Source: Ginglymostoma cirratum (lineage: Eukaryota). From it: DNA of 64,000 bases. Where the stretch lies: positions 7,344,093-7,408,092 of the forward strand of contig JAHRHZ010000084.1 of the NCBI GenBank assembly GCA_024137785.1, read 5' to 3'. The notes under the pieces were generated by a model, which saw only the letters and a program-made list of their open reading frames with translations, ran no database searches and was not told the DNA's origin. Both the position numbers and the translations under genes were made by a program. Shown piece by piece: positions 4,835-63,980 of the stretch. Position 1 is the first letter of the stretch, and each line of letters starts with the position of its first letter.

Positions 4835-4933
4835 GTAAAGATTATCTACTGATCTGTAGATGGGCAGGTGGCATGCTGGCAATTTTATTATTGATAATCA
4901 TTTTGACAAGACTCGATTAAAAGGCATCAGCTG
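4835..4933 (+). CDS. Gene A (paralog) TM exon GKDYLLICRWAGGMLAILLLIIILTRLD*KASA; Arg in TM and stop after TM (short-tailed receptor or pseudogene)
   Basis: Acceptor gatcctgtag| and donor G|gtaaga. Codon-by-codon similarity to 47086-47190, including the identical end AAGGCATCAGCTG and a similar intron start. AGA at 4858-4860 and TAA at 4918-4920. Confidence 0.75.
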
Positions 4934-6005
4934 GTAAGAACTTCCGTTATTTCATTGAATATTTTTAGTTGCCAACACCCAATGATCCTTCTTCGAAGAC
5001 AAACAGTGCAGATGAATTGTGATTATCTGCAGACGAATAGTCAGTACTTTCCTACATATTTAAAAAATGAAGTTAATATCACAGACGGTTATTTGATAGG
5101 CAATTCAACATGACAATATAAACCAGACTTACTTCACCCCCTCATTCTAACCACTTACTCGATTTACAATCGACCTCCTAGATCTGAAATAGCAATGCAA
5201 GTGTGTTCATTCTGAAGAAGTATCACAGGAACCAAACTGTTTCCCTTTCCTCGGAGATCTCCAAACTAATTTCACAATACAAACGAGACTGTAAATTCGC
5301 CGTCCCTACAAGAGGAAAAGTCTACTCAAGTGTGAGTAGCGCCAAGGCAGTGCTGGTAATGATAATACATCCCATACTGAGCTGTTCCCCTTGGTAATTC
5401 ACGTCACTGGTATTGCTTGTGCACTCAATAAATTATGGCCGCAAACATACATATGAGTTAAAAGCACAAGTAGACCATTCAACTCCTCCAGCTTATTCGT
5501 GATTTCATAAGCTTATGGTTGAACTGATAGTGTTTGGAATTCTACATTCCCAACTAGCCATAGAAACGTTGGATTTCTCTTGCCTAACAGGATTCTAGGT
5601 ACTACTACCTTTAAAATATTCAATAATGCTACCACCACCTTCTGGAGCAGAGAGTTCCAAACTGTCACAGTCATCTGAGACAAAAAAACACTCCTCATCT
5701 CTGCTCCAGAAGGACAACCACGAACTGGTACACTGTATACCATGGTTCAGGATATGCCCATTCGTTCTTTGTCTACCTTTTCAAAATTGTTCAGGATCTC
5801 AGACACTGCAATCAAGACACTCCGCACCCTTGTTAATTCTAGTGGAAAGAAGCCTAGTCTATTCAACTTATCTTCATCAGACAACCCGCTCATTACAGGT
5901 GTCAATCAAATATACTTCCTCTGAATCAGCTCAAGCATTTTTTATAGTTTATTGTTATATTTGTGCGTTTATAACTTACATTCAATATGGGTTTCCTTCC
6001 TTCAG

Positions 6006-6049
6006 GTGTAAGAAGACATTCTGTGGAAGTAGATGAAGCTCAACAGCCG
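6006..6049 (+). other. Gene A 44-nt cytoplasmic exon GVRRHSVEVDEAQQP (downstream of the TM-exon stop, so now untranslated)
   Basis: Acceptor tttccttccttcag| and donor CCG|gtaagc. Same length, phases and RRxS motif as 47798-47841. Confidence 0.72.
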
Positions 6050-6479
6050 GTAAGCTTACCATGTTTCTTCATATGAAGATCAGTTAGGATGGAATAGCAA
6101 GAAGTCTTGCAAACATCTAAGAAGATTAATTAAATCATAGACGAAAAAGGGCTATTACGGAAGTTTAGGTCCTTGAAAACAATTATTCAAGCAGACCAGT
6201 TCTTCACTCTTTGCCCTTATTTCTGTATTTCTGCATTTTTAATGAGCTGTCTCCTTCCTATTTGAAATTTCCATTGACTATGCTCCTGCCACATATCCAG
6301 GAAGTCTATTTTAAAGTACTACAGAAGTTCCCACAAAAGCAGTCCTCATTTTCCTATGATTTTCTGTCAAGAATTTTAAATGTTCACTCTGGATACTGAC
6401 AGATCCACAATTCAAAACATATTTCATAAAAACTGGAAGACACGTTGATACTGTAAATCAAAAAGAAAATCTGTCACGT

Positions 6480-7495
6480 ATTACACTACACTCCCTTGTT
6501 CGCATTCCACAGGGAACATTTCTACAGGGGTTATTCTGGTCCATTCTTCCTTCACGCCCAACACACCCTGCCGCTCACAGCCCCACGGCACGTTACCCCT
6601 GCAAACACTGAAGGTGTATCGCCTGCCCATTTGCCTCCTTCCTCCTCAGTATCCAAGGCCGAAACATACCTTCCAGGTGAAGCAGCACTCTACCGGCACT
6701 TCTCACAATCTAGTCTACTGTATTCGTTACTCACAATGTGGTCTCCTCTACACTGGGGAAACAAAGCTTAGACTGGGTGACCACTTCACGGTTCATCTAT
6801 GTTTTACCCACAAAAATGGCCCTGACCTTCCAGTTGCCTGCCACTTTAGCACACTACACTGTTCCCTGGACAAAATCACTGTCTCAGGCTTGTTGTAGTG
6901 CTCCAGTGAAGCTCAACGCAAGCTGAAATAACAATACCTCATTATCTACTTGGGGGCCCTGCAGCCATTCGGAATCAATGTTGAGTTCAACAATTTTAGA
7001 GCCTGAAATCACCCACGTCTGAGACTCCCGACCAAGATCAAAAGACCTTCATAGAATTCCTACAGTTTGGAAACAGGTCCTTTGTCCCAACAACTCCACA
7101 CAAATCGAAACCAGGTTCCTGGCGCTGTGAGGCAGCAATGCTAACCACTGAGCCACCAATCCTTGTTATCACATTGTCTGCCATTCCACACTACCTATTG
7201 TTAGCCACCAACAGTTTCCATTAAAGCTGGTCACCCGCCCAGCCATATTAATACCGACTCCTTTGTCTAACCAACTGTTATCCTCTTTCCTCAGGCTCTA
7301 TTCCCATCTATCATTTACTCTTTACATCCACCCCCCACCCCCACTCCCAAATTATCCGCAGAATTTAAGGCAACATTTGCCACGCTACCATCAATTCTGA
7401 GGAAGGGTCACCAGCCCGGAAACATTAACGTTGATTTCTCTTCCCAGATGCTCCCAGATTTGCTGAGCTTTTCCAACAACTTGTGTTTTTGTTTA
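6480..7495 (+). mobile_element. Penelope-like element 3' part (GIY-YIG endonuclease remnant plus terminal repeat), interrupted by a SINE fragment at about 7050-7160
   Basis: ORF 6614-6898 contains NLVYCIRYSQCGLLYTGETKLRLGDHF..PVACHF. The terminal motif tctgaggaagggtcaccagcccggaaac lies at about 7397. Confidence 0.82.
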
Positions 7496-10900: not shown

Positions 10901-12760
10901 GAATAAAGAAATTTTGCTCCAATTTTGCCAGGCTTTGGTGAGACAACCTCTGGAAAATGTGTGCTCTTTGCTTTTAACTTTTAAGGAAGGAAGAAACAAA
11001 AAGAGAAATTGCTAGAGAAACATTTCTGAAGAAGGGTCACTCGAAATGCCAGCTCTGCTTTCGCCCAACAGTGCTGGAAGATCTGCTGAGTTACCCCGGC
11101 AATTTCTGTTTCGTTTCAGAATCCTAACTTCCACAATTCTTTTGTTTTTTTTTTAATGTAGAATGTACTCAGATTGAAGAATGCACAGTGAACATTCATT
11201 AAATTTATACGTGAAATAAGTTTGGTGACCATTGATGAGAGATAGAGTAAATTCAGCCTTTATTCTCTGATGTTTCAAAGGATGGGGGGGGCTCTTTCAC
11301 TTGGGAAGCAGTTCATAGAGTGCTCTACGAACAATATTTTAGTACAGGCATTTGTTGAATGAGAACAGTTGTTTGATGATTTTGCAATCAACGAAGCCAC
11401 CAGGGAAAGTAATCATAACTCAAAGGATTTTCACATTCTGTTAGAAACTGAAAATCTTGGCTCTAAAACACGTGTCCAAAGCATAAATTAAAGACAATTG
11501 CAATGATTCAAAGACAGAATTAGCTACGTTGTACTGTGAAGATATCTCAGAGGGAATGAGTGTGAAAAGCAATAAAACACATTCAGAATCTTAACGAAGA
11601 TATTTTCCATCGAGAATGAATACGAACAGCATTGACCAGCCTCAGTTAATTAAAGAACTGAATAGATCCTTATGAAATTCTTCCACTTACTATTTTCAGT
11701 TAAGCATTAACCTGTTTCTTTAAGTAGGTTACAAAAGCAGACAAACACCTTTCACGTCAAGATTCAAACAGGACACCATCATAAAATAAAGAGGGAGAAG
11801 GACGAACCATTGAGAGAAACCAAACCAATTAAGTAAATTCATAAATAATGGGTACTTTTCTTGTTCCATGTAAATGACTTGAATATTGGAATACAGAATC
11901 AAATTTCAAAATTTGCTTGTGAAGGCAAACTTGCAGTGGCAAACAGATGATGGTAGTAATGTTTTATAACAAGATATAGGCTAGTGAGTGGCGAGTGTAA
12001 TTTAACAAAATGGAGATGATGAATTATTGAGAACGTGTAAAGAGAATCCACATAGCCTTATTGGAGCCTTTTTGACGAATGTGCAAGAACTGACAGGCAC
12101 AGAAGGTGTTTGTGAATCAATCTTCGAATATGGCAGGACATAATAAGAATATAGCTGTCAAACCTGATGTTTTCATGAAATTCGTCAATGGGGGCATTGA
12201 GTACTAGAGTAGGGAAGTAATGTTGAAACTTCATAGATCTGGTTAGGTCACCAAAATAATAGTGATTCTAGTTCTGGTCATCACAATTTAGGAAAAGTGG
12301 GTCCTAGAAGAGATTCACGTGAGCTTTATTGGGAAGGTACTCGAGTTCAGAGATAGTAGACATGTGATCCGGTTGGACAAGCTTGGGTTGTTGGCCTTGA
12401 CTAAAGAAGTTTGGAGATCTGACATAACAGGGATGTACAAGATTATGGAACGTTCAGATAAGGGAGACAAGAGAAACTGTTCCCATTCATTTACAACACA
12501 AAGTCTAGAGATCGTTGAGTTCAGGTTTTGGAAAAGAGATGCAGAGGAAACGCAAAGAAGCTTTGTTTAACATGAGTGATATTGGCCTGGGAAATGTATC
12601 CTATTAGGGTGGTGGAAGCAGAGACCATCGATAATTTCAAATGGGAAATCAATGGGTACATGAAGAAAGTAAACCTGCAGGGTGACAGTAATAAAATAAG
12701 GGAGTAGCACTGAGTTGCCTCAAGAAAAGCCTTCAGACTTGATAAGCCATGTGCTGTCTT
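7930..12760 (+). mobile_element. Patchwork of old, heavily decayed CR1 fragments
   Basis: Remnants VVVIGSNDI (ORF1 esterase-like), ADWELENV, ICRFCDD, LRQPLE/ggtgagacaacctctggaa and DITGMYKIM. No long ORF. Confidence 0.6.
8990..9347 (+). mobile_element. tRNA-derived SINE sharing its 3' end with a local LINE family
   Basis: B-box-like gggttcaaatcc. The 3' end gggcaattgggtatggacaataaatgc..aatgaataaagaaaaaaa recurs at 1-78, 49750-49825, 15530-15595 and 1660-1730. Confidence 0.75.
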
Positions 12761-13179
12761 CAATATCTCTAAATTGCTCTAATTTAAAATTATTTTCATT
12801 TATTTACTGATGGCAAACGGGTAGCAACGGATGAGGGCAACACTTCTTGCCTATCTAATTGATGCTGAGGTGATGGTGAGTTAACTTCTTGAACTATTGC
12901 AGTCCATCTGGCGTTGGTACACTCATAATGTTATTAGGAGAATGATTTGATTACTTTGACAAGCAACAGCGAAACGACAGTGGTAAAATTCCATGTCAGT
13001 GTAGAAATGGTGATATTCCAAAGCATCTATTACCCTTCTGGGTGGTAGACGTCACAGGTTTTTGCAACACCAGAAACGTATGAGAGGAAATTTCATAGCA
13101 GCTTTTATTTACAAGCTCAATTGTCTCAAGTAGTGAGTGACAATGAGCTAACAGGTAATATTAAACATTACTTTCACAG

Positions 13180-13345
13180 ACTGAACAAAAAGGTAGAAAA
13201 GACAAGATGACTGTGCTACTTAAAGATTGCTGATTCCAAATCGAAATCATCAAAACCTATACAGCAAGACAATTGTGCGGGATATGGAGGTGTAAAGCTG
13301 ACAAGAGAGAAGCTGAGAATCCAGAAAAGCAGTCTGACGTTGTGA
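13180..13345 (+). pseudogene. Gene A decayed ITIM exon (frameshifted)
   Basis: Acceptor ttactttcacag|. Homologous to 52934-53080 but 2 nt shorter across the first ITIM. It reads TEQKGRKDKMTVLLKDC* (TGA 13231-13233); the ancestral frame resumes as ADSKSKSSKPIQQDNCAGYGGVKLT. Confidence 0.68.
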
Positions 13346-13769: not shown

Positions 13770-15595
13770 TCCGTGCAAAAGACGAGGCTGATGCATTTGT
13801 GTCCATTTTCAACTAGAAGAATACAAAATACATTGCTAACGTACCCAGCATCGCAAATGCCAATCTTCAATGAACATTATTCCATTCATGTGATATCAAT
13901 AAACAAATGAAGTCACTGGTTACTGCGAAGGGCATGGACACTGACAACAATGAGCCAGCTGAAGACTTCCAATCCAGACTAGATTTGTCACGGCCAACCT
14001 GTTCCATTGCAGCTTCACCACAAGCATCTGACTGGCAATGTGTTAAATTGCACACATATGTCCTCAAAAAGCAGGACACCTCCAGATATGCCAATTGCCA
14101 CTATATCAATCTACTCTGCACCAGTGGAAAGGTTATGGAAGGGGGCAGGGCTTTGAAAAGACACTTGCACGGCAGTAAACTGCTCACTGGGGCTCATTTT
14201 TGGGTTCTTCCAGAGGCATCAAGGTATAATCTCATTCAGATTTTGTTCCAAATATGGACAAAAATACCTGAACTCCGGAGGTGCGGTGAGAGTGAGTGCC
14301 TTGAACATCAAGTAAACATTTGACCGAACATGGTTTCACAGCATTCGCAGAACTGGAATCAATGGTGTTCAGAGGAGCAAGATTCCAAGAATTAGAATCA
14401 TTCCCAGCAGAAAAGATGATCGTTGTTGTTGTTGGAAATCAATCAGCTCAATCCAAGCCCAATACACTAGGATACTAAATAAAAAACGAAACAACTGCAG
14501 ACGCTATAAATTAGGAACAAAAATAGACGTGGCTGGAAAAGGTCGAGAGGGGTTACTGGAACCGAAACGTTAACTCTGACCATTTCTTCACAGATGCTCC
14601 CAGACCGGCTGAGCTTTTTAAGTCACTTCTGTTTTTGTTCCAATACAGTAGTATGTTCCTCAGGGTAGCCTCTTAGCCTAAATATCTTCAAATGATTCGA
14701 TTATTTTGTCACAAAATAGTCAGAATTTAATGTATTTGTTGGTGATGGCACAATATCCAACATAATTAACAAATCATGCGGTACTTGTTCATAGGCAGCA
14801 AGACCTGACAAGTACTGCATTGACTGGTGAATGGCAAATAACACTCGTGCCACAAGACTGCCAGTCAATGGGAATCTCAAACAATAGAGAATTAACCATT
14901 GCCCTTCAGCATTTATTGGCATTGCCATCATTGAAAGTTACACTTTCAAAATTCTAGGGTTTCTGTTGAACTGAAATTGAACTCGAACAATTAAATTAGC
15001 ACTGCAATTGATTGAACAGTTGAGGGCAAGGATTTCTGCAGTGAGTAATTTGCCTCCGAACATGCCAATGCCTTTCCACACAAGGCATCAATCAGCAGCG
15101 TCATGGAATACTCTCCATTCGTCTCGGTACGCGCAAATCTGAGAGCAACAAGAAGCTCAACGTCATCCAAAGAAAAGCAGCATATGTCACTGAAATTCAA
15201 TCCAACACACTCCACATTCAATTCATCCACACTTGACATACGGGGAAAACAATGGGTGCTATCTGAAAGTTGCACAGTCACAAATCTCCAAGGCACCTGC
15301 AATAGCAATGTCCAATCCCATGACATCTACCATCTGGAAGGAAAAGGGCAGCAGATGTTGGGGTCATCTGCAAGTTCCTCTTCAAGACACATACTGTCCT
15401 GCATTACATTTCTCATTTTACAGTCGTTTGCTCCTGAATCAAAATCCTGGAGCTTCCTCTGAAAAATAGTATGGAAGCATTTACTCACAAAGCACTGTGG
15501 CATTCAAAGGCCAGCTCAACACAATCAACAAGGATGATTTGGAATGCATAATAAAAAAAAATTAGCCAGTAATATCCATTTCCCATGAATAAAAC
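13770..15595 (+). mobile_element. Decayed non-LTR LINE (RT region to 3' end), partner of the SINE above
   Basis: KKQDTSRYANCHYINLLCTSGKVMEG resembles the KKxDxSxxxNYRPISLL RT motif; gttcctcagggtagc encodes VPQGS; the 3' end is shared with the SINE. Confidence 0.7.
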
Positions 15596-16252: not shown

Positions 16253-16435
16253 TGCTGCTTACAATGTGACCTTTTCTGCACTTGGAAAACCAATCATGGA
16301 TACTTGATGATTCTGTTGAATTCCTCCACTCTGTCTGCAGTTTTGGTGTTTTCTACGCCAAAAGGTAAAAGTCAACATTGCAATTAATCTCCATTAACTA
16401 GTCTATAAAAAGCCCTACGTGGAAGGGAAGAAATG

Positions 16436-20640: not shown

Positions 20641-22998
20641 GAATTGGGAATTATCTTTTATCCACCATAACCCAGAAAACAAAATGGAAGCACTTGGTAG
20701 CTTCATGCCTATGCAAGTCAAACAAAACCTTTCCATACAAAAGGTGGATCTCGAACCACTGCTGCAAACTTTGATTATAATACTGTTTCTACGTGGGCAT
20801 TAAATTATTTGAATGTGCTGATTAGCTGTAACACATGTCATTCCACTCATCTAATCATGATCCAATTCCATCTGTGACGTTTGCACCGGAAAAAAGCACC
20901 AGGGCACATGCATAGCAAGGAGAGGAGGTATACGGATGCCGAACGACTATGTCTTTAAGCTTGTTTTAATGGGACGCTTAATGTTTACATTTTGGAAAAT
21001 CCTATCCGTTGATTGCTCCAGTAGAATGGTTTCATACCTTGGTGTGTCTCTTGGCCTTCTTCTCATGAGAAAGGGGCCATTCGCTGTGGGCCTAGCATTG
21101 TTCACATCAAAAAGTTATCGTTTCACTGTCCTGTAGAAGTGTCTACAACTCTGGTTCATGGCCATTTATTTTAGCTCTTTCTCCTCTGCTTGTGCCATGT
21201 TTGTTCAGCTAACCAGTCTGTTCTTGCGCAATCTTAACATGCTAGATTACTTCAACTTTTTTTCGGAAGCTAATTTACTTGCTTCAAATAACATGATCCT
21301 GAAGATTTTTTTTTTTTGCAGCTGATTTTCTCCCTACTGGCCTGCTATACCTTGTCTCAATCTTAAGCCTACCTCCCTTATTATACCATAGCCTTTTCCT
21401 CTTGGACTTACAACCCTACAATGGTCTTAATACTACTACTTAATTCCATTGCTTGTAACTTTCCCTTACTTCCAGTGCTTAATGGCATAATTTACAGACA
21501 GGCCCTAACAACAAATAAATTTACCTAATTTCTGTGGTATCACTCTTGTTATTTATCATTCATTCTAGTCTCTCACCTCCATTGTTTGGCATTGTTCTAT
21601 TAGCTTCCTGAAACTGTTGCCTTTTCAATCCCAACAATTTCTACTTCTCCACTTTCCTTGTGCATTTCCATCTGATCAACTCCCCACAATTAACTGTAGA
21701 TATGTGATATCATAGGTGCCTGACAGAACTGCTGCTTCTCAGATATTTCATACTTGATACTGTTTTAAATCAGTCTTAAGAGCTGAAATCCTTGCACAAT
21801 AGTAATTTCCCTCATGCTCGCAGGGTTTTCCTCCAACTTTAGTGATCAATACCACTCGCCCGGCAAATTCTTCATATACCTGGTTAGTTTTCTTTGTTAT
21901 CACAATAAAGTCTGCTTTGATACCTTTAAGGTCAAGTTGAAAGCATTTGCTATTGCTTTCCATGCTGAAGTTTGATAATCTGCAGATGGTTATTTTTGCA
22001 AACGGCTATGTATGTTCATGGTTGTCCATGTCGGAATATCCTATAAAATTCCAATCCAAACATTATTCAACGACTATATTTACCGGGATATCTTCACAAA
22101 TCAGGTTACATATACTTTCAGTCAATTAATAATAATTAACGTTTCAAACACAAAATAATTTCAGTTCTGATGAGGAGTCACTGGACCAGAAACTTTAGCC
22201 AACTTTTTCTTCACAGGCGCTGCCACACCTGCTGAGCTTCTTCCAACTGTTTCTGTTTTTGTTTCTGTTTCCCACCTTCCGCAGTTCTTTGAGTTTTTTT
22301 ACGACAAAATAATTTCATTTCCCTTCATATTTTGACGTAAGCATCTCGGGATTGACATCGACTTCGCCAATTCTGCTGTGACGAACAGTGAGGTTTTACC
22401 TCGAAGCTCTCAATGTGTCTCGATTGGGTAAGGACAATGCGAAAGCTGGGGATTGGATTTCTATTAAACAGCGCGCCTTCAAGGTAAGTTAAATGTTAAA
22501 ATTGTTTTCCAGCGCTTTTCACTCCGCAGCAGAGAGCTAACAATTGTTACTCTTCAGGCTCCAAAGTCAACGTCATTTATTGGTTTATTTAAAATATTTT
22601 TAAACATGTTTACCTATCAGCTTGAAAGTGGTGACATTTCCATCGGCAGACGAATACAATCTTGCAAGGAAATAGCGATCTCCTCTGGTCAGTCTGCTTT
22701 AGCATTGAGCGAAGACGTTTCAAGAATTTCCAAGTTTGGGGGAAGTAAAGAGATCACCATATTTCACTAGAAATAACAATCAAAGGAAATTTTCGAATTT
22801 GCCTTGATGTGGGGATAACTTTTTCTTACAGAAAAACATATCCATATCACGTCTTTCACACTCACTGGACTTCCCAAAGTGGTTACAGCCAACTTTTTAA
22901 GTGCAGTGATAGTTGTGATTTAGGAGACACCACAGCCAATTCGCACACTGAAATCTTCCCAAATTAACAATGTGATAATAACCAGGTAAACGTTTGCT

Positions 22999-29160: not shown

Positions 29161-29174
29161 GGCTATACCATTTG

Positions 29175-41793: not shown

Positions 41794-41848
41794 ATGTTGG
41801 TGAGAGCAACAATTCTGTTCATGGCTTTTCTGGGTATGACATGTTCAG
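41794..41848 (+). CDS. Gene B exon 1, signal peptide MLVRATILFMAFLGMTCS
   Basis: ATG in AAAATG context, hydrophobic 18-mer, and phase-1 donor TCAG|GTACTC. A 208-nt intron follows before the V exon, and the splice creates GAC (Asp) in frame. Confidence 0.8.
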
Positions 41849-44800: not shown

Positions 44801-47800
44801 ACAGGTGTTAAGGATATTGCTTGTAATAAACATCAGAACAATGTAAACCCACAAATATTATTCTCAGCTAAGCACTGAATGCAGACTGAGAGTCCATAAG
44901 TTCACTTTAGTAAATGCATCATTTAGAATTGATATTTCAAAGAGAGTAGGTTCAGGCCAAGAGGGAAAAATGAATTGGGGACATAAATGACTCGACCATG
45001 TTCTTATTAATGGTTGGATCAATCTCAAAGGGTCGAATTGCCTGCCCATTGGACGCCCAGCTTTAGCTTTTAATTCTGATGCGCCCCCCCCCCCCAGGCA
45101 GAATCTGTTCCAAAAAAAAATTCAACAAAGTGATTTCTCTTACAGAGCGTTGACGTCTGGGATTACGTTACACTTGCAATTTATGACAGATTTTCTCCGC
45201 AGGTTCATCCTTCCTGTGCATTGTTTGAAAAACATCCCAACATTTTTGCCATGCATTTCTTTAAAAATAATAACAAAGACCACGTCTAAAATACAGTAAC
45301 AACGAAAACTGTTGTCACATTAAGAATGGCACAGTATTGGTGTGGAAGGGGGCGGATTGAAAAGTGAAAGAAAAGAATGCAAATTAACCTTTTTTAACGT
45401 TTTACTTTCTGTTATAGTTCCTCCAACCCTCCTGAAAATCATTTCCATGGAAGGGATTTCAGGGAATAATTTGACATTCGAGTGTAAAACGACTTCCTTT
45501 TACCCAGAGGATTTAGGAATCTCCTGGTTGAGAGATGGTGTCAAAATGCAGGCCGGAATAGAAACTGTGAAAAACAAGACCGTGGATGGTCTTTATGAAG
45601 TTACTAGTTCGTTGGAAGATGCACAACCCGTTCGGAGTGGTGCAGTTTATACCTGCCTGGTATCTCATGCCTGTCTTAAGGTGGCCACCAGCGTCAGCTA
45701 CACCTTTAACCGAGGTAAGATTGAAAATGTACCCAATACGGAGTTGAGTGCATGGTGAGAGGTAAAAACTTAGATGTGCATTCTTAAGGCATTGGACTAA
45801 CTCTAACTCTAAGACGTCGAGTAAATGTGCATGGAGTTCATTCTCAATGTCAAAGAAATTGAAACAAAGTAAAATATTCTGAGACGTTTTGCAGATGTAG
45901 CAGGGCGACTAGTTTCCTAAAACGTCCTGAAACGGAAAGTTGATGTGAAAACTACTCAAAAGTTGACAACTCAACAGTTTTATTATGCTAAATGAAATCA
46001 ATGTGTCGATAAAATTGTTCCTTTTCACTTGAGTAACTTATGCAACTTGTACATGTGTGTCGTTTATAAAACTTAGCTGATCTCTGCCAACAATATCTTC
46101 AGTTGCCTGCAACCTACACTTGGAAAATACTGGCCTCCCAGTCTCCCGTTGTGTCTTTCCTTCTTTAAGGTGCCTTTTGAACCTTATTTCTCTCTGTCTT
46201 AAGATTACTTTATGTTGAGCGGACAATGCTGTGTACAGTGCCTTTGAATTATTAACTTGGTTAAAGGCGCAGTTTGATTACAATTTCTGCTTGCAAATAA
46301 GAGTTGCAGTAGGTGCTTTCTGAGAAGGCTGGAGAAAGGCGCCATAAAGCATACAAAATCCTTATAGGTGTTGACAGTGTGAATGAGAAAAGTGTACTTC
46401 CGCTGGCGGACCGCCTAGGACCAGAGAACACAGTTTCAAAATAAGGTGAATGGGAATTTCTTCATCCAGAATCTTTGGAATTCCCCACCCAGAAAGCTGG
46501 GAAAACTCAGTCACTAAGAGTATGAAATACTGAGATCGACAGAGTTCCAAATGTTAAATGAAATGTAGGTAGTGCGAGAAAATAGCACCGTGGAAAAACA
46601 ATCATGATCTAATTGAATGACGGAGCCTGTTTCAAGGTCTCAGTGTCTATCCCCGCTCCTGTTGTCTATGTTCCTTTGTAACTGCCATTAGGGGATGAAA
46701 AATTTGCCAGATCTTGCAGCTGTTGCACATCAGTCTGGTTTGAGACAATGAGCAAATAAGTGCAAATTCCTTTACTCATAGCAAACAGCTCTCCTATACT
46801 GAGAGAACTTACCCATGCTTTTAAGTCATGAAATGCGTTTTCTCCATACAATGCTTTACTGAGCTGCAGTGAATGTCTTCTGGTGCACGTTAAGGCCCTT
46901 GCACAGCTACACCCCCACTCCCACCCCACCCCCACCCCCCATCAAATTAAAATGGTCCAACTTTTCTCACAGTGGGGTTATCCTGGGTGACACCTTTGCA
47001 ATTTATCATCGTGTGCATTATGCTCTGCACATGTGACTCACTGTGTTCCAAACTTGTTCACTTCCTTCAGGTGTTCATCCTGTAGGACAAGGTAGCACTC
47101 TTCCAATGATCGTTGGATATGCAGGAGGAACATTTGCAATGTTACTAATCTTGATCGTCTTCATTAGACTGAAATTGAAGGCATCAGCTGGTGAGAACCT
47201 TCCATATTTCGCCGTGTGCTCTTTATTTCCTTAGACCCAGTGTAAAAAAGCATTAAGAGCAGGTGAGGAATCAAGGGCTGTGGCTTTAAATTTTGGAGTT
47301 GAGAATCTGAGGCGGATATGAACTGCAAATATTTCACCTTCTTATTCGAACTGGACATTCGGTTTGTTCACCTCCGTGTTGCTCCAGTCGAAATTATGTG
47401 TTTTCTATTATTGTTCAGTGCGGATCCAGTTCCCAAGGAAGAAACTTTTATAAACTAGATTTTAGCATTTGGCATTAAAGTGGATGTTTTCGAACTAATA
47501 ATCAGATATGCGCATCATTAGAATTTATTTCCATTGTAATTTGTGGTGCAAATGGGCCGCCGACTTGCACTTTGCACTATCACACAGAGACTAACTCTGC
47601 ATCATTGAGTGCAGTGCAACTTGAGCAGTGAGCAGGTAAAACACAACGTACTACTGTCGGTACAGCTGAATACCTTCGAACTGTGGTTTTCTGTACTATA
47701 CATATAAATTAAATGTGTCTAACAGCGAAGGCATGACATTAGATTTGTTGATACATTAATTCTATCATTAACAGTGCATTACTTTGCTTTGTATTAGGCA

Positions 47801-49121
47801 ACAGGAGAAATTCGATGGACGCAGGTGAAAATGATGAACAGGTAGGACGACAATATTCTTTCAATTCCAAACAAAAATCGTAAGGGAGGTCGGCACATAG
47901 AAAGGGTAGCAACGAATTATGCATTCAGTCGAAATCATTTAGATTTCATAGAACATCGAATTCTATAGCCCAGGATGAAGCTCCCGTACTTCTGCCACCT
48001 CGATGAGATAATAAATCAATTTGTTCCACTCTCGTGTTTTACCTGTATATCTCATTTTTCGTGTCAATCCAATAACTTTTTTGAAATTTCCTATCGAATC
48101 TCTTCCAGTCACTGTCTCAGTTCGTAGGCAGCTCACCACAACGGGCTGCAGAGACAAAACAAAGCTCTCCACAGATTATTTACCTATAATACCGAAAGCG
48201 TGTCGCCTGGATCCGAAACAACATATCCATGAAAATAGTTTTGCCTCATTTACTTCATCACAGACTCTGAAAATGTTAAACCTTTATGTTAAACCTCCCC
48301 TTAAATGTACTTGATCTAAGTAAAATAATCATTTCCAGTCTCCCGAACATCATTGAAATCCCTGAAAGCTGGGACCCTTCCAGTAAATCTCTGCTATATC
48401 CTCTCGAAAACCTTGAGATTTTCCTGAAGTCGTGCCTGGAGTGGGACACAATATCTCAGGTCTTTTATGAACTATATTCCTTTGTTAGTAGTTCTGGGAG
48501 CAGAGTGTATGTGTGGGGTCGGGTGAAGTGAAAATAATGGCTTTGGAGGTGTTGCGAGAGGGTTTTTGCCAAGAACATAATTGTTGGTCGCTATTTAGAG
48601 GATGTAAGCTTCCAGAAATGTTATAAGAACAGCCTAAGGCTTCGCTGTCAGATCTCCTAATAGATTGCGCTAACTATGGAATAAGAAAACCGCCATCTCC
48701 ACAAAAATGTCAAACAGAGCGAGATAAATAAGGAAATAATAAATGTCTACTGGTCATCAGTTAGATGTTAAAATGTAGTTCAATGAATTAAACGCCCTGG
48801 GTTTCATATTTAAAATATTATTCTCGACTACATTGGTGAGATATTAGATGCAAATCACTGACAGTTGACAGGATGCAATTGCGACTTTGCTTGATTGACT
48901 ACTGCCTGAATGTTAACAAGTCTGGTATTCAGTTACAGTTGGTGGTGGCTGGCTGCATAATCAAACTTGCTGCTAATGATATTTCTTACCTCATATTCTA
49001 GCTTAGACAAGAACCAACGAAAGAAAATGTCGCTTATGCTACTGTAAACTTAAAAGCCAAAAAATATGCCGCCAAACCCAGGCTCAAGGAAGAATATGTT
49101 GTCTATTCCCAGGTAAAATGA
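41794..49121 (+). CDS. Gene B: type I membrane IgSF receptor, leader-V(J-like)-C1-TM-cytoplasmic tail with two ITIMs (SIRP/NKp30/B7-H6-like architecture), 6 coding exons, 313 aa
   Basis: Hand-spliced exons 41794-41848, 42057-42362, 45418-45714, 47071-47190, 47798-47841 and 49002-49121. All introns are GT..AG, phases are 1,1,1,1,0, and the total is 942 nt with no internal stop. Confidence 0.88.
42057..42362 (+). CDS. Gene B exon 2, Ig V-type domain with J-like G strand
   Basis: Acceptor tttttttttcatag| and donor G|gtaagt. Translation: DAKVTSSKVDQFPKLLKAARGDNVSMFCTF...VFWWR...GSLHVFNVALPDSGMYHC...AEGGSLLTVC. It shows the B-strand Cys, C-strand Trp and DSGxYxC motif. Confidence 0.93.
42560..42755. 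repeat. Imperfect inverted-repeat element of a second Penelope-type family in the V-C1 intron
   Basis: gacaa..cagaaatcac..caggtgatagtccaaca..tttatttgaa..aagcttt mirrors aaagctt..ttcaaataa..tgttggtctataacc..gtgatttctg..ttgtc. Confidence 0.72.
43385..43660 (-). mobile_element. V-SINE (HE1-like) in the V-C1 intron of gene B
   Basis: Reverse complement of the V-SINE core GGAGTTTGCACATTCTCCCCGTG...CCGGGTGCTCTGGTTTCCTCC, plus the tRNA B-box GGTTCGATTCC. Confidence 0.8.
45418..45714 (+). CDS. Gene B exon 3, Ig C1-set domain
   Basis: Acceptor ttttactttctgttatag|, donor G|gtaaga, phase 1/1. C1 hallmarks: LTFECKTTSFYPEDLGISWLRDG, DGLYEVTSSL, YTCLVSHACL. Confidence 0.93.
47071..47190 (+). CDS. Gene B exon 4, stalk plus transmembrane segment
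   Basis: Acceptor cttccttcag| and donor G|gtgaga. Translation GVHPVGQGSTLPMIVGYAGGTFAMLLILIVFIRLKLKASA is an uncharged hydrophobic run followed by basic stop-transfer residues. An in-frame alternative acceptor (catcctgtag|) gives start 47086. Confidence 0.88.
47798..47841 (+). CDS. Gene B exon 5, 44-nt cytoplasmic exon GNRRNSMDAGENDEQ
   Basis: Acceptor tttgctttgtattag|, donor CAG|gtagga, phase 1/0. An independent paralog of identical length lies at 6006-6049. Confidence 0.8.
49002..49121 (+). CDS. Gene B exon 6, ITIM exon LRQEPTKENVAYATVNLKAKKYAAKPRLKEEYVVYSQVK*
   Basis: Acceptor cttacctcatattctag|, phase 0. VAYATV (49029-49046) and VVYSQV (49098-49115) match the ITIM consensus (I/V/L/S)xYxx(L/V). 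Stop TGA at 49119-49121. Confidence 0.85.
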   Translation, partial: LRQEPTKENVAYATVNLKAKKYAAKPRLKEEYVVYSQVK

Positions 49122-51815: not shown

Positions 51816-52933
51816 GGTAATGTCCTTTCGGGAAGAAAATCTGCTGCTCTTACCTGGCCTGGCCGACAAGTGACACAAGACTTTCATCCAGGTGATTGAT
51901 ATTTAACGATGATTAACATTTGATGTAGTCAACCATACACTCAGTTCAAAACAGTTAGCGATGGGCAGCAGTTGTTGACATTGTTACTGCCATCTTTATG
52001 CCATGAAAACAAAAGACAAAATTATGCCAGTGTTAGGGAATCGATGTCTCTTCTGCCGATTTGTTCGGGAAAAAAAATCAAGAGAGATATCAAACGGTCA
52101 GCTGGCTCTTACTATCAGTTTTAGACTGGAGTACAAACAAAACCAACAATATTTAATTTTATGGATTAGCAGTAAGAATGACAGCCCTGAACTGTAACTA
52201 TAGAAACTCACCTGGGAATAGTGGCTAATATCGATTTTACAGGAAAAGTACGGCACCAAGAGCAATCTGCATTACACCTATCCTGTTGAATCCAGCACCA
52301 GGACAAATACAAAACCAGACAGGCAAAGCAGGCTACTATCTATAGCCAAGAGCAGCTACATCTTCAATGTCGTTTGGTACCACACTAAACAGTAGGGAAT
52401 TGAAAGCTCAGGGATTTAACCTACCAACTGTATTGGGCCCGACCATTTCAGCCAAGGCTCACCATATTCACCCTAGGTCCCAGGGTTCTGAAAATCAGCA
52501 GCGGTGGGGTAAACGAGGTTGGAAATGTGACTTGAGGCCTTTCCATGGGATAACCACATCAAATCGACTGTCAGGGCTCAGAAATTGAACCTTGAAAGGG
52601 ATGTTTTGCAATACCAGAATTCCAACCACATTTAACACGCTGGCATTTGATTCCTTTCTATTTTAAAGAAGTAATAACCTGCTGTTTTAAATGGGCAATG
52701 CTAATATTCTGACTTATTTTACGAGAAGTTTAAAGCATAATACCAAGAATTTTTAGGCAGGGCTGTAGAATGGAGAGAGATCGCAGGTTGAAGACAATAC
52801 TAAATTCGGTTGCAATCTGAAGTTGGTACCTGATGAGAGGAAATTCCACCAAAGCCTTTTAATAAAACCTCGACTGCCTCTCACAATAAGTTGACGATGG
52901 CCTAATGGGTGATATTAAATTTTACATTCACAG

Positions 52934-53062
52934 ATCAAGAAAGGAAGCAGAAATAACAAACTGATTTACACGGCTCTGTAAGTGGCTGATTCCAAGAAAT
53001 CATCAAAACCCAAACTGCAAGACAATTCCACATTACATGCAAAAGTAAAGGTGACAAAGTAG
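52934..53062 (+). other. Second ITIM-type exon (alternative/additional terminal exon of gene B, or a relic): IKKGSRNNKLIYTAL*VADSKKSSKPKLQDNSTLHAKVKVTK*
   Basis: Acceptor tttacattcacag|, phase 0. It aligns without gaps to exon 6 (Y12, K21, K25-P26, L28, V38-K39). TAA at 52979-52981 follows LIYTAL directly. Exon and flanks are homologous to 13080-13325. Confidence 0.65.
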
Positions 53063-56000
53063 GCGAGAAGCTGAGAATCTAAATATATTGGGAAGGTGGA
53101 AGATATCAATGGATACAGGTCTAGAGTATTTGATTAATCATCACACAACGTGCTCAAATCACAATTGACATTCATTGCAATCAGACAAAGAACCAATTAT
53201 CTGGAATAGGTGTCCAATAGGAAATGCTACATGGAGGAATTGTTGGCCAGTCCATTACAAAACCAATCCAATGTCGGGCGCTTCCCACGCTAGGGAAAAG
53301 TTTCCAAAACCATTTTCAACTTGACTCAAGTTGAAAGTTAAATTCAGACCAAGAGCTCAAGTTTTCAAACCTGTACTTGTTTGTGCATTTCAACATTAAC
53401 TTTTACTTTGTAGGTTGTTTGTTGATTTTCACAAATATGATTTTAATTCCGTTGGTGGACTAGTTCCTGTTTGATCTGAAAGCAATGATTCACGACAAAT
53501 GATCTTGTTATTTAACTTTCTCGGTCATGGGATAGGTAGGCAGGAGGAACGCCACTGCACCCAAAACTCCACAACTTGCCCCAAAACCGTTTTCTTTCGT
53601 TATTCGAGTTCAAAACAATCAGTGCAGGCTGTTTTCAGTAGAGAAACATATCGTTCAGGCATGTCGTTACGGAACATTTTGATAGATGGTGATGGTGATA
53701 GGACCACTGATTTTGAAAATTCATAAGTCTGCATGCATCAATTCACTGCTTCAAAGTTGGCAGGCCTCTTCGCCTAGCAATATAAGTGGTTTGTCAGAGT
53801 GAGGGATGAGCAACAGGAATTAGAGCGTGTAAGCCACCGTCTATCACTTCTTGTGGTTTCTCGAAGTTACAACCAGTGATCTGTAGTGTCTTGCTGCATT
53901 GCACTTGATCTAAACGTAAATCATGCTTTGTGCTTAATATACAATGTAAATTATATTTCACATCATTCTGAATATTAATAGAATCTTTCTAACTTTTCTA
54001 TACACTATCTATATACAGATCTCTCGAGATACCAAAAAGCTGTAACAGACAGTACATAAGAATGCATAATTACATCCATCAGTTTCAATGCAGTTGGTAA
54101 AAATAGTACATGTCTACAGCAATTCTAGTTAAACAAATAAAACAAAGAACTGTAGATGCTGTAGCTCTGTAACAAAAAGAAACTACTGTCAAAACTCGGC
54201 AGTTTTGGCAGCATTTGTGGGGAGAATGTGAAGTTAACACTTTTTGTTCAGTGATGATCCGGTCATCTGTTTTGATGAAGACTACCTGAATTCTAAATTT
54301 CTGAGTAACACACAGCTTCTGCTAGAGTTAATGTTCTACAGACCCTATTGGCCTAAATAAGTTCAAAGATACATCAAAAGACAAAACAGATTTCTCAAAC
54401 TCTAAGTAAAAAACAATGAAGTAAGATTCTTTTTCTAAAATCTATTTTGGGATGCAAAATGAATCGGGAAATTCTCTTTGCCACCAAGAAAATCACAACG
54501 GACATCTTCCTTGAATTGATGCAGTCTGTGATGATTCCAATTTTTTGAAACATCAAACGCCTCTTGCCAAAAAATGGATGTGACTCATTTTCCATCGTCC
54601 AGATGGAAGCAACTCCGATAAACATAGCACAAACACAAAACAACACAATAAAATTATATTTATTCACGCTCACACATTCCTTACACAGCACACATTCCTC
54701 ACACAGAACTTAAACAATGTACTTTCAAACTATTTCAGCCCAATCACATTCTTGATAATGTGTTCACTATCACATTTCCAGCTGTATAACTATGGTTGAA
54801 TCAATATGTCCCATCAGAATGATTTTGAATTTCAAGTCATAGATTTCTTTGCAGATGGTAACAGAATGCGATAAGTATATACTCGTGATTCTTTACAACC
54901 ATGATGGACATTGACGTTAAGTTGCCAAAGAGTCAACAATAATCATAGTTTCCTTCTCCAGTGTTGAGTACTTCGTCTGATTGCTTTTAGAAAAATGTCC
55001 CACTCTGTTCTCTATTGACAAATTCATCACCTTGTCATAAGCCTGCGCTTATTGCAAAGTTTTTAGCATTAATTTCCATCTGAAACGCTTTGTAAAATGG
55101 GGGGCCGGGGTGGTTACACTAATTTATTTGTTAACATCACCTTCAGATTCTTTCTGTAACAATTCTGCTAAAGGTGCAGCTGTTGTGCTGATGATTGACA
55201 CAAATATTCATTGAAAATCGCAGATTCACAAAAATTTCATGAACTCTGTTTGGTTTTAGGAATGGGGAATTCTTTGAGAACATTTACTTCCATTGTTCTT
55301 AATTTTCAAGTTGCAAACCTCTCCTCGTATTTCAGTTATACTGCAATCCAACTTCATTTCAGTTTATACATCCAAATACAAAAACTGTGTGGTCTCTTAC
55401 AGTAGTCATATCATTGTTTCAGATGAAATCAGTTGCTTCAAATTATATTAGTTACACAATGCTGATTTTTTTTTTCATATTCTAAGTAAACTCAAGGTAA
55501 CAGGATGACATTGTACTGTCTGTATATAACGCCAACTATTTGTTCCCTTCATTAACCTATCCAATGTCGCTCAATAACTTTATTGGTTTGCCTTTTTTAT
55601 TAGAAGCCTAATGAACTACCTTTACTTTGAAGTAAACTATCTGGACTATCCAATAGTTTAATTTTGTATAACAGTATCAAATAAAAACTTTTTTTAATGA
55701 TCTGAGTTTTCTGTTCCTTACTACAAGATTACAATGCAACATTCTCCACTTACACTACTGCTACAGTTTTAATGCTCATTTCCTTTCCTGATGCATGTCT
55801 TTTTTAAAGATTCCTTAGGCGCCTATTGTTGCAATTGGTCTCCTATTTCAGCTTTAGTATGTCCTTTTCTACTGTCATAGAGGAATATTATTTTCTTTCT
55901 GTGACATTTGAGTTCTAGCCTTTCTCTTATCTTGCTTGGAATCCTTCCATTCATTCCCTAAAGCTACCTTTTCAAACCCAAATAAATATCTTCTTCAAAT

Positions 56001-57224
56001 TTCCTCGTTGATTTCCATATGACAAATATCCTACAAGTCATAGGCTGTGTACAACAGCATGGGTACATACCAGGACTGCTGTTCTCAGACTTTTGATATT
56101 TGAAGCTCGTCTAAGTAAGACTTTGTTGTGGCAATACTGTTTTAGAATTCCGTATTTATGATTTTCTTTGAGTTCTCAAAATCTTTTCTCGAACTTCGGT
56201 GAGACACAGTATCAATCCCAATGTTTTTCCTTTCCTACAATTTCTACAAATTCCTGATTAGGTTTGTTTCTAATCAGCTTGGATGTTAATTAATACTTTC
56301 AAGCTCATGTACGTTTAGTTTTTTTATCTAGTTTCATGCTCTGTAAATTGTTCTTCTGACAAACTGACATACATATTTAAAGTGGTATCTAGCAAAATAT
56401 TCTGTAACATTCAATTCCAAGAATCCTTCAGCCATTTCATATTCCAGGTTAAAAACCAAAAGAACTATGGATGCTGTAAATCAGGAACAAAAACAAAGTT
56501 GCTGGAAAAGCTCAGCAGGTCTGGCAGCATCTGTGAAGGATAAAACAGAGCTAACGTTTCTGGCCCGGTGACCCTTCCTCAGAACTGGGGTATGGAGATT
56601 CAAAAGTGGAACGCTCATTCAATGTTCTGAATTCCTCTAAAATCTTGGCTCTGGATTTACATTGGGAAATGTGGTCAATTTTCCATGGGAGAAAACATCG
56701 TAGCTTAATGCTTGCGACTGTCCCTTCATAATAAGATGCTTCATGTGCATTCAGTTCGATAACTTGCAAGAGTCTTCGGGAAATGCTAAATTCCAACTAA
56801 TTTTGTATATGTCAGCTATATCGCCTGGGTGAAATAAGTATATTTTATTCTTATAGAGCACTTCATTAACTTGATTTTGAAATATTGCTGTTTAAGTAGA
56901 AACAGATTTCTTCATGACAAAATCTTATCACCAGGAGTAGATTAAAGAAATCACATGCATACACTGGCAACGTTCTCGAAAGCCTTCACAACTCTGAAGT
57001 ACTTTTGAAGCTTTGACAACAGTTGCAGTTTAAAGATTTATGAAAGACAAATAGCAACCTGGTGAGTGACGTGCACAACAATTAGATAATCTGGAAATGC
57101 CTATTTTGAACAGTGTCTGTCACAACACCAAAAGAGCACTTTGATGCATGTGAAACAATATCTATTATATGAGAGCCTGAAAAGTATAATTCAGGGGAAA
57201 GGCGTTTGTGAACATGAGACCTTT

Positions 57225-61095: not shown

Positions 61096-61464
61096 GTGTT
61101 ATTACCCTTGATCGATAGGGTTAGCGGTGTTCAAGGCTATGAAAACTTTTAATGGTGTAAACATAAAAGGTTTTAATGGTATAAAATACTTAGGATAAAC
61201 TACATTCTGTCTGAAGAATCGGTTATGAAGTAGATTTTTAAAAGGCCCAGTGGTATTTGAATTTCACAGTTGATGCCAAAACATTAGATGTATTCAAGAG
61301 GCGGCGAGATATAGCACTTGGGGTGAATGGGAACAAAGGTTATGGGGAGAAAGCAGGATTAGGCTCTCGAGATGGACAGTCATGATCGTGATTAATGGCG
61401 GAGCAGACTCAAAGGGCTGAACGGCCTCATCATGCTCCTATCTTCCGTGTATCTATGTTTCTGT

Positions 61465-63685
61465 AGCAGATCGAGAGGACACGCGTTCATCTTAGTAAAT
61501 GGTTAATGTAGAATTGATATTTCAAGGGGGTGGGGTTTCATACGAAGACGGGAATATGAATCGGGAATACAAACCGCTCAGCCATTATCTTATTGATTGT
61601 TAGGTCAGGCTCAAAGGATCGAATGGACTACCCTTTGGAACGACCTACGTCAGGTCCTAATTCATATCTTACCTCCAGGCAGAAACTCCTTTAGGAAAAA
61701 AAATGTTCAACAAACCTAAATTCACTTCCAAAAGGGAAAAAAAAGAAACTCGGATTATACGGCACCTGCACTTTATCATAGATGCTCCAATTAGGTTCTT
61801 TCTCGTTTTGTATCGTTTGCAAATCATCTCAACATTTTGCCCAGCGTTTTTAAAAAGGAATGCAAAGACGAAGTTTAAAATACGATAACAAGGAAAACTA
61901 TTGCTGCGTTAAGAAAGGAACAGCATAACGTGGCGTTGAGAGGAGGGGTGGGGGGAACAAAAGAGAATGTACGTTGACTTTTAAATCATGTTTTACTTTC
62001 TGTTATAGCTCGGCCAACTCTCCTGAAAATCATGCCCGCAGAAGGGATTTCAGAGAATTATTCGAAAATCACGTGTAAAATGATGGCCTCTTATCCGGAA
62101 AATTTAGGAATCTCCTGGCTAAGAGATGTTCCACAAATTCTGGCCGGAATAGAAACTGTGAAAAACTAGACCGTGGATGGACTTTGTGAGGTTACTAGTT
62201 CTTTGGAAGAAGCACAGCTTGTGCAAAGCGGTGTAGTTTATACCTGCCAGGTATCTCATGCCTGCCTTTAGGTGCCTGTAAGCGAAAGCTACACCCTCAT
62301 TCGAGGTAAGATTGAAAATATTCCCAATACGAAAATGGAGGGAGTGGTGGGGGAAAGCTATTAAATGCGTATGCTTAATTAATTGAACAGCTGTTCAAAC
62401 TCGAGGGTACCATGTGAATGTGACCAGTGTCCTTTCTCAATGCAGCAGAAATGGAAAGACCATAAAATATTCTAAGGTCACTTGCAGGTGCAGGAAGACG
62501 AATAGTTCCCTGAAATTATCTGAAATGGGAAGTTGATGCGCAAACTGTTTAAAAGTTGAGAACGCAACAACTTTTCGTATGTGAAATGAACATACAAATG
62601 AAATGGATCCGTTCCACCCGAGTAACTTACACAACCTGTACAGCATCTGTCAGACCTGCTGATAGTTTCCAGCAACTTCTGTTTTTATATTGCTTATCCT
62701 GTTCAGCTGATCTCCGCCTACAAGATTTTCAGTTGCCTGCAACGTCCACTGGCAAAATTCCGACCTCTCTAGCTCGCGCTGCGTCTTATCTTCATTAAGA
62801 CACTTCTTGAACTTCATTTCTCTCTGTCCTAAGATGACTTCATGTTCGGCTGATAATGCTCTGTGAAGTGACTTAAAATTATTATTAACCTGGTTAAAGA
62901 TCTAATATAATTCAAGTTGTTCTTCTTACATATCCTAAAGGTTGCTGTCAGTGTTGTCTGGAAAGCTGGAGGACAGTGTCGTAAAGCATTTAAAAATCCT
63001 TAGAAATCTCCACAGGATAAACGAGAAAAGGATGTTTCTCCTGGCTGATGGTCTAGAACCAGAGAACACAGTTATAAGCTAAGATGCAGGTCATTAGAAC
63101 TGAGGTTACAAGGAATTTCTTTAAGCAGAGGGTGGTGAATCTTTTGAATTCTCCAGCCGAGACTGCTGAGAAAACTCAGTCACAGACAGTATAAACTACT
63201 GAGATCGACAAAGTTCCAGAGGTTAAATGATATATAGATAGCGTGAGAAAATAGCGCTGAGGAAGATCAAACATGATCTCGTTGAATGCTGGAGCATGCT
63301 CCAGGGTCCCAATATCTACCCCTATTCCCGTTGTTTATGTTCCTTTGCAACCGTGGTTTGGGGTTGAAAGCTTTGCCAGATCATGCAGCTGTGGTTCATT
63401 AGTCTAGTTTAAGACAAATGAGTAAATAAGTGCCAATTCCTTTACTCATAACAAACAACCCTCCGCAGCAGAGAGAAGGCTGTCGTGGCTTTATTAAATG
63501 AAATGGGTTTTCTCCACAGCTGCAGTTGATGTCCTCGGATGTACATTAAGGGCCTCGTACAGCTATTCCCGCCGATATTAAAACAGTCCAACTTGGCTAA
63601 CTGTGAGGTTATCCTGGATAAACATTTGTAGTTTGCCATCATGCATGATGCTCTACGTTTGCGATTCCTTGTGTTCCACACTGCG
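61465..63685 (+). repeat. Segmental duplicate of about 44880-47055 (C1 exon with flanking introns)
   Basis: Colinear similarity through unique intron sequence, e.g. ttagtaaatg..tagaattgatatttcaa, gaaaactcagtcac..tactgagatcgaca, aaataagtgc.aattcctttactcata. It ends at tgtgttcca, just before the position of the TM exon. Confidence 0.85.
62009..62305 (+). pseudogene. Copy C: C1-domain pseudo-exon paralogous to gene B exon 3
   Basis: Same 297-nt length and the same acceptor/donor sequences as 45418-45714. It reads ARPTLLKI...ITCKMMASYPENLGISWLRD...YTCQVSHACL, with in-frame TAG at 62167-62169 and 62269-62271 where gene B has AAG. Confidence 0.92.
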
Positions 63686-63772
63686 TATCTGTCATAGTAA
63701 CATGTGCATAACATATATCTAGACCCCAGCCATCCGGGAATTGTCCGTTAATTCTAAATCCCATCTTTTTTG

Positions 63773-63980
63773 CAGGTGTTCACATATGCAGCTTTAATAA
63801 AAGAAAGACTGACACACATTCATATGTCACATCTCGTTACCTTGCCAATGAACAGTCCAAACATGTATCACACTGATTGTTTTTGGAAACGCAAATCTGG
63901 AAGAAATTTTGCACATATCATGATCCACTCACAGCAGCAGAAAAACACATGGTTTTTGACTACGACGAAATGCTGGAAAG
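63773..63980 (+). repeat. Duplicate of about 31780-31982
   Basis: Shared caggt.ttcacat.tgc, gaaagactgac, cattcatatgt.aca, tcacactgatt, ctac.acgaaatgct. Confidence 0.75.

Follow-up and report, generated by a model that had tools for sequence, protein, structure and literature searches.

The window analysed here, a 64,000-nucleotide stretch of the Ginglymostoma cirratum genome (contig JAHRHZ010000084.1, positions 7,344,093 to 7,408,092 of the forward strand), probably represents a birth-and-death stretch of a receptor gene family, with one intact inhibitory gene, gene B, among broken copies. The predicted product of gene B would expose a V domain and one C1 domain outside the cell and would be anchored by a neutral transmembrane (TM) segment; its tail would contain two, possibly three, inhibitory motifs of the immunoreceptor tyrosine-based type (ITIMs). 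Around gene B there appear to lie a C1-only partial duplicate (copy C), possibly another C1 relic, and a 3′ end belonging to gene A, with an Arg in its TM exon.

Gene B and its domains

Gene B occupies positions 41794–49112 of the plus strand; all its exons are open and have GT–AG borders. The model is based on self-tblastn, on scans for motifs and on tblastn searches with 37 homologues; it comprises seven exons, the last of them optional. Every exon is matched by homologues in tblastn. The exons and an adjoining remnant are as follows.

41794–41848, plus strand: exon 1, split leader (leader scan, frame check)
42057–42362, plus strand: exon 2, V domain (Pfam V-set E 7e-9, with I-set a close second)
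45418–45714, plus strand: exon 3, single C1-set domain (Pfam C1-set E 2e-11)
47071–47190, plus strand: exon 4, stalk and neutral TM segment, with an RLKLK stop-transfer sequence
47798–47841, plus strand: exon 5, acidic linker of 44 nucleotides (nt) (splice score, homologue peptide)
49002–49112, plus strand: exon 6, tail with two ITIMs (family hidden Markov model (HMM) E 3e-5)
52934–52981, plus strand: optional exon 7, 48 nt, which would add a third ITIM (LIYTAL) and a stop
52922–53071, plus strand: ancestral terminal exon, decayed (tblastn to the C-terminus of predicted proteins P0015 and P0151, E 6e-8)

Exon 1 consists of 18 codons and one base, with the donor CAG/GTAC, and the leader matches the first 15 residues of Heterodontus P0151 (tblastn). 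Exon 5 is required because exon 4, which is of phase 1, otherwise hits a stop in exon 6; this short exon scored best for splicing among all 3n+2 exon candidates, and its peptide resembles the corresponding stretch of P0151 and P0165. The ITIMs of exon 6 are VAYATV and VVYSQ (VVYSQ then V/I). Their tyrosines are 23 residues apart, a spacing within the typical range for tandem ITIMs, such as those of SIRP-alpha and KIR. Exon 6 ends either by reading through to VK and a stop or at the donor CAG/GTAAAA, which leads to exon 7.

Both features of an inhibitory member, an ITIM tail and a neutral TM segment, are found in gene B, as are the conserved residues of the family's V and C1 domains. Between the V and TM exons there is one C1 exon only, with no further Ig exon found by tblastn or HMM. 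None of the annotated-protein matches was flagged as a protein encoded by the window, although length limits could hide one. Judged by its sequence, gene B is a live-looking inhibitory receptor member; once phosphorylated, its ITIMs would recruit SHP-1/SHP-2-type phosphatases and damp activation, by analogy with SIRP-alpha and KIR. An intact gene B with a neutral TM segment and two ITIMs had been put forward in a preliminary description of the window; that model holds, and the leader, the 44-nt exon and the optional last exon can be added to it.

The V domain has 52 residues between its cysteines, and the V exon is 58% identical to P0151. The AlphaFold (AF2) model of this domain, calculated with a 42-sequence family alignment, has a predicted local distance difference test score (pLDDT) of 91.4 and is without a C″ strand. 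The nearest solved folds are the shark IgNAR V domain (VNAR), TCR V-alpha, VL and CD79b, with TM-scores of about 0.8. In the G strand of the V domain, the family carries a J-like motif with the consensus GNGTGSxLxV. The V exon of gene B ends in a Cys (LLTVC, 42359–42361), as it does in the relatives P0004, P0111 and P0063; this residue could form an inter-chain disulfide, like the G-strand cysteines of UrIg2.

The C1 exon is 74% identical to Chiloscyllium P0004. In the PDB, UrIg2 is closest to it in sequence (1.3e-17), followed by Ig heavy-chain constant domains and domain 3 of SIRP-gamma. The AF2 model of the C1 domain (pLDDT 88) has MHC class II beta-2 and IgNAR C as its nearest folds. The antigen-receptor-like character proposed earlier for the V and C1 domains is thus borne out, for the former by the VNAR- and TCR V-like fold and for the latter by the matches to UrIg2, Ig and MHC class II.

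Broken copies around gene B

Four pieces besides gene B can be assigned, with differing confidence, to the same family.

61466–63682, plus strand: copy C, partial duplicate, 69% identical in nucleotides to 44881–47054 of gene B
22358–22567, plus strand: candidate fourth relic, C1 exon in advanced decay and interrupted by stops (tblastn)
4835–4933, plus strand: gene A TM exon, with a donor GT at 4934
13165–13342 (approximately), plus strand: decayed terminal ITIM exon of gene A (blastn, weak family-HMM matches)

The duplicate that forms copy C is 2.2 kb long and ends 16 nt short of the TM exon; it contains no V, TM or tail exon. Its C1 pseudo-exon (62009–62305) is identical to the C1 exon of gene B at 81% of nucleotides and 68% of amino acids. 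The pseudo-exon has TAG stops at 62167 and 62269; its splice sites, Trp and two cysteines are retained. The earlier description of copy C as a C1 pseudo-exon is therefore confirmed, with two stops and a place inside a partial duplicate. In the C1 tree, gene B, copy C and Chiloscyllium P0004 form a clade with a support of 99 in the Shimodaira–Hasegawa-like approximate likelihood ratio test (SH-aLRT). The segment at 22358–22567 is possibly a fourth relic, the second with a C1 exon; it is matched by one family member only (P0074), with an E value of 1.4e-4 against the whole window.

Gene A is represented in the window by two pieces only, the TM exon and the remnant of the terminal ITIM exon. The TM exon matches that of gene B in tblastn (E 5e-5) and in blastn (69% of nucleotides over 104 nt), and it matches the family HMM with an E value of 4e-4. 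Over 31 residues, the gene A TM segment is 74% identical to Heterodontus P0015, as against 53% for that of gene B. The exon translates as LLICRWAGG... up to a final ...TRLD-stop. The Arg, encoded by AGA (4858–4860), falls in the outer third of the TM segment; the corresponding codon in gene B is GGA (Gly). The stop is a TAA at 4918–4920, and the five codons 3′ of it are the same as in gene B. The acceptor is displaced by 12 nt compared with gene B: the ancestral acceptor AG is lost, and an in-frame substitute 12 nt on (cctgtag/GT) has a weak pyrimidine tract.

The terminal exon of gene A is 70% identical in nucleotides to 52833–53079 of gene B over 253 nt (blastn). It is frameshifted, and one Tyr and one ITIM context are lost, with a LTYAAL-type motif turned into MTVLLK and an AVYAEV-type motif into AGYGGV. 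No trace of exons 5 and 6 was found by blastn or HMM between 4934 and 13080. A V or C1 exon is likewise missing at useful significance from 1–41000, and tblastn with 37 relatives, the family HMM and blastn found none in 1–4834; much of 1–4400 is repeat-derived. Weak tblastn and HMM matches at 3629–3805 were considered as a C1 remnant of gene A and rejected as chance: by eye, this segment looks, in a different frame, like a GIY-YIG fragment of a Penelope-like element, and no blastn match was obtained. The TM Arg, the stop and the decayed ITIM exon ascribed to gene A in the preliminary description are thus real, while the gene itself is reduced in the window to its 3′ end, with no V or C1 exon.

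The receptor family and its tail types

An exhaustive search with the C1 exon of gene B returned 712 representatives at E ≤ 0.001. The single-domain, high-identity matches (up to 74%) are V–C1 proteins of sharks, rays and the chimaera Callorhinchus. The multi-domain matches comprise Ig heavy chains together with a white-shark protein named ‘titin-like’ (1105 residues, ten C1 matches), which is probably UrIg2. Both wider searches returned cartilaginous-fish proteins only (31 and 42 matches). The family profile search yielded no bony-vertebrate relatives within the reach set by its word index, and a tail-only search for relatives of SIRP-alpha gave Callorhinchus paralogues only, a blank that is uninformative given the word index. 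When compared with the PDB, the family profile matched UrIg2 (8e-36), the IgA1 heavy chain (9e-35), SIRP-alpha (1.5e-30, colinear over V and the first C1 domain) and SIRP-gamma (3.9e-27); neither B7-H6 (NCR3LG1) nor tapasin-related protein was among the best 60 matches.

The automatic names given by NCBI to these proteins include SIRP-alpha-like, ‘signal-regulatory protein beta-1-like’, ‘tapasin-related’, ‘NCR3LG1-like’, ‘Ig lambda-like’ and ‘TCR beta-like’; given this spread, no orthology is established for the family. A published description of the shark and ray family was not found in a literature search that left most subscription journals outside its reach. The family is already in the databases by automatic annotation, yet apparently undescribed. 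As far as the searches could see, it seems to be a multigene family of non-rearranging V(J)–C1–TM receptors confined to cartilaginous fish.

The classification of TM charge and tails suggested in the preliminary description was run on the predicted homologues, the tail types being read from the C-terminal sequences of predicted shark, ray and chimaera proteins. It separates ITIM, Arg-TM short-tailed and R...DH members. Type 1 (23 proteins) has a neutral GG-type TM segment and a long tail in which LTYAxL-like and TVYxQT-like motifs alternate. In type 2, the GG-type TM segment carries an Arg close to the outer end, and the tail is short and free of ITIM-like motifs; examples are Scyliorhinus P0165 (LIIGRVGG), Mobula P0106 (ICRSIGGG), P0129, P0081 and P0070. 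Type 3 (eight proteins: P0013, P0166, P0167, P0175, P0043, P0046, P0118 and P0126) has a distinct TM segment, R...(I/V)DH, with the Arg near its start and DH near its end; several of its members share a conserved short C-terminal exon (RLxISA...HN...). We know of no adaptor rule that fits the R...DH segment, and a motif scan of the window found no TM exon of this type.

Among members with a GG-type TM segment, tail tyrosines are lost in five of the six with Arg, compared with 6 of the 29 others (Fisher p 0.007, indicative only, the proteins being related and not independent). The Arg is found at neighbouring TM positions in three lineages: Ginglymostoma, Scyliorhinus and Mobula. Within a species, ectodomains are 88–93% identical across tail types. 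The ectodomains of P0165 (Arg-TM) and P0166 (DH-TM) are 93% identical, those of P0151 (ITIM) and P0164 are 88% identical, and P0043 and P0066 are 92% identical over C1. In the C1 tree, the tail types are interleaved inside species clusters. Such identity across types is the hallmark of paired receptors, and the pattern is that of KIR, LILR and SIRP. Pairing is therefore supported as a property of the family, not of this window: the paired-receptor proposal made earlier for the locus stands for the family, with its three tail types and closely similar ectodomains, and does not demonstrably extend to the window itself, where no ectodomain of gene A is visible.

A conserved V–C1 relative in Hemiscyllium and Chiloscyllium (P0089, P0158 and P0159) is more than 90% identical across three carpet-shark species and has a Lys/Pro-rich tail with no ITIM. 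The Chiloscyllium punctatum accession of this relative, GCC26424, is two apart from that of the closest match to gene B, GCC26426, and the two genes probably adjoin each other.

Window layout, alternative readings and known systems

The single run of N in the window lies at the centre of a palindrome.

40512–41105, no strand: assembly gap in a palindrome, with the N run at 40612–41011 and inverted arms

The approximately 100 bases on each side of the run are reverse complements of each other at 97%, and the arms of the palindrome are 40512–40808 and 40809–41105. One peptide can be read on the plus strand before the gap and on the minus strand after it. The gap reflects either a pair of repeats placed head to head or a misjoin of the fold-back type; the inverted arms that flank it look repeat-derived, and both encode the same peptide. 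It ends 783 nt 5′ of the gene B leader exon and interrupts no exon. Gene B and copy C are located on one side of the gap, and gene A and the possible fourth relic on the other. With a palindrome centred on the gap, the sequence cannot be taken as continuous here; the join is unverified, and nothing but gene A's order and orientation with respect to gene B and copy C depends on it. Of the three same-strand tandem paralogues originally described, all pieces do lie on the plus strand of one scaffold, while the link between gene A and gene B crosses this gap.

Much of the interval between gene A and gene B is occupied by three fragments of long interspersed nuclear elements (LINEs), at 24852–26259 (plus), 29163–31490 (minus) and 34127–35430 (plus), with Pfam matches to RVT_1 (up to 2e-28) and Exo_endo_phos_2 (2e-10). 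No host genes flank the receptor pieces in the window, only LINEs. On visual inspection, two plus-strand open reading frames (ORFs), 3560–3900 and 6449–6895, resemble the GIY-YIG endonuclease portion of Penelope-like elements; the translation of the first contains a stop, and the second has no confident Pfam match. A short interspersed repeat of about 65–140 nt is present in both orientations, and the same repeat makes up a false N-terminus of the predicted family protein P0066.

7392–7493, 11021–11150, 14480–14641, 22162–22298, 42892–42957 and 56450–56587: copies of the short interspersed repeat

The minus-strand ORF 21748–21963 (71 codons) has a YYCAR-like end that recalls framework 3 of VH. 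It was rejected as a V exon: it has no Pfam match, its surroundings match 55913–56103, and it is probably part of a repeat.

Several observations weigh against reading the window as one intact inhibitory gene among broken copies of a paired family. The J-like motif of gene B is degenerate (RAEGGSLLTV, compared with GNGTGSxLxV in the family), with the GxG lost, and its ancestral last exon is broken by a Gln-to-stop change and two Tyr-to-His changes; there is therefore some decay in gene B too. Words of gene B are almost absent from two small sequencing runs labelled as the same species. In region 1–6000, read contigs from the two runs fall on repeats only and none on 4801–5000, which is not proof of absence. 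The homologues of the family are gene predictions and not cloned cDNAs, and for the shark family we only infer adaptor and phosphatase binding. Gene A, besides having lost its ancestral acceptor and exons 5 and 6, shows neither a V nor a C1 exon over the 4.8 kb upstream of its TM exon. As the distance from C1 to TM is 1.36 kb in gene B and copy C, the ectodomain of gene A is either more than 4.8 kb away, behind transposons and off the window, or gone.

The TM exon of gene A combines a Gly-to-Arg change with a stop that removes the ITIM tail, as in activating KIR and Ly49 receptors, with decayed ITIM sequence left downstream. Members with an Arg in the TM segment would, from the position of this residue, need an adaptor with an immunoreceptor tyrosine-based activation motif (ITAM) and a TM Asp; an Arg in the outer third resembles the arrangement in FcR-gamma-coupled receptors. 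On one reading, which is doubtful, gene A is a functional activating receptor: V and C1 exons would lie just 5′ of the window in a transposon-swollen intron, an ITAM adaptor (FcR-gamma, CD3-zeta or DAP12 type) would be bound through the TM Arg, and gene A and gene B would form a true local activating/inhibitory pair. The combination of Arg, stop and decayed 3′ ITIM exon is the classic signature of a switch (PMC2213150), the TM exon is open to its stop with a hydrophobic core closer to Heterodontus than is that of gene B, and the intact predicted proteins P0165 and P0106 carry an Arg one or zero residues away; the repeat-derived content of 1–4400 makes intron expansion plausible. This is countered by the missing ectodomain exons, the lost acceptor with its weak substitute, the lack of reads on the TM exon in the two small runs and the neighbouring copies, which are dead. 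That gene A is a dead 3′ fragment, with the Arg and the stop as ordinary decay and the window silent on pairing, has a probability only a little short of even. The absence of V, C1 and exons 5 and 6, the lost acceptor and the frameshifted terminal exon point this way; copy C and the possible relic at 22358 suggest that partial dead copies are common here, and the identity between the TM exons of genes A and B (69%) is about that of the decayed terminal exons (70%), so that no constraint is visible. However, the two disabling-looking changes are exactly the ones by which activating partners are defined, intact relatives show them as well, and gene B has the same five codons that follow the stop in gene A. 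On balance, we lean modestly towards gene A being a relic rather than a working activating gene.

A different question is whether the genes are plain orthologues of tetrapod SIRP-alpha and SIRP-beta, and so an already characterised group, which is improbable. The automatic names would favour it, as would the position of SIRP-alpha and SIRP-gamma as the best non-Ig PDB matches apart from UrIg2, colinear over V and the first C1 domain. It is opposed by the single C1 domain in place of two, by a V domain without C″ whose nearest folds are VNAR and TCR V and not SIRP domain 1, and by the equal or higher scores of UrIg2 and Ig. Furthermore, the profile and tail searches gave no bony-vertebrate protein within the limited reach of the word index, the expansions are species-specific, and the window is without flanking genes for synteny. 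A broader proposal is somewhat less improbable, though still unlikely: cartilaginous fish as a whole may possess two-domain VJ–C1 receptors whose ectodomain has been shuffled among an ITIM tail, an Arg-TM segment and an R...DH segment; these would be living relatives of the precursor of antigen receptors that preceded RAG, and the window would capture a switch in progress. The birth-and-death reading, with gene B as the one intact inhibitory gene, is still preferred over these alternatives.

Mammals, birds, frogs and bony fish are known to have paired activating and inhibitory families, which drive innate self/non-self decisions. If the shark family proves well defined, the paired-receptor principle would be pushed back to the origin of jawed vertebrates, and a concrete non-rearranging VJ–C1 receptor would take its place beside UrIg, NKp30 and SIRP in discussions of how antigen receptors arose. 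What the window contributes is a model of an intact inhibitory gene, together with a possible case of a switch from inhibitory to activating.

By analogy, the system would work like SIRP, KIR and other paired families, yet it fails to show the two C1 domains that define SIRP. As in SIRP, a non-rearranging N-terminal V domain with a J-like strand is followed by a C1-set domain, the members have either a tyrosine-rich inhibitory tail or a basic TM residue combined with a short tail, and the family profile is colinear with domains 1–2 of SIRP-alpha. The tail pattern (LTYAxLxL ... K-rich ... xEYAxhQ) presumably recalls the SIRP-alpha tail as well. SIRP differs in having two membrane-proximal C1 domains (V–C1–C1), whereas gene B and the shark family have one; the V domain of the shark family is short and without C″, its basic residue is an Arg near the outer TM face instead of the Lys of SIRP, and it has a third TM type, R...DH. 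SIRP remains a strong PDB match to the family profile, below UrIg2 and IgA.

The NITR genes of teleosts and other paired IgSF families of fish are clustered and fast-evolving, with a V domain that carries a J-like motif and with ITIM or charged-TM variants; the NITRs are without a C1-set domain and belong to a lineage separate from the shark family. In KIR and Ly49, activating forms have arisen from inhibitory ones by few nucleotide changes, repeatedly and in separate lineages, through gain of a charged TM residue and tail changes that eliminate the ITIMs (Abi-Rached and Parham 2005, PMC2213150). Gene A resembles them in its TM Arg and in the stop that removes the ITIM tail, and the Arg recurs in separate lineages of the shark family. 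KIR differ in having C2-type Ig domains and Ly49 in being lectins, and a gene fragment is all that shows the switch here.

The V domain of shark IgNAR is similar in structure only: the V fold without C″ gives the top Foldseek matches, while IgNAR V is rearranged and hypermutated and its sequence identity to the gene B V domain is only about 20%. UrIg and UrIg2 are, like gene B, non-rearranging elasmobranch genes of VJ and C1 type, and the UrIg2 structure 9dmx is the best PDB match. UrIg2 has nine C domains in the nurse shark, with liver and gill as its main sites of expression (Flajnik et al. 2025, PMC12227049), compared with one C1 domain in gene B, followed by a TM exon 1.36 kb downstream. 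No ITIM is mentioned for UrIg2 (PMC12227049), whereas the shark family has immunoreceptor-type tails. A two-domain VJ–C1 gene has been postulated as the precursor of antigen receptors before RAG (Fig. 2 of PMC12227049).

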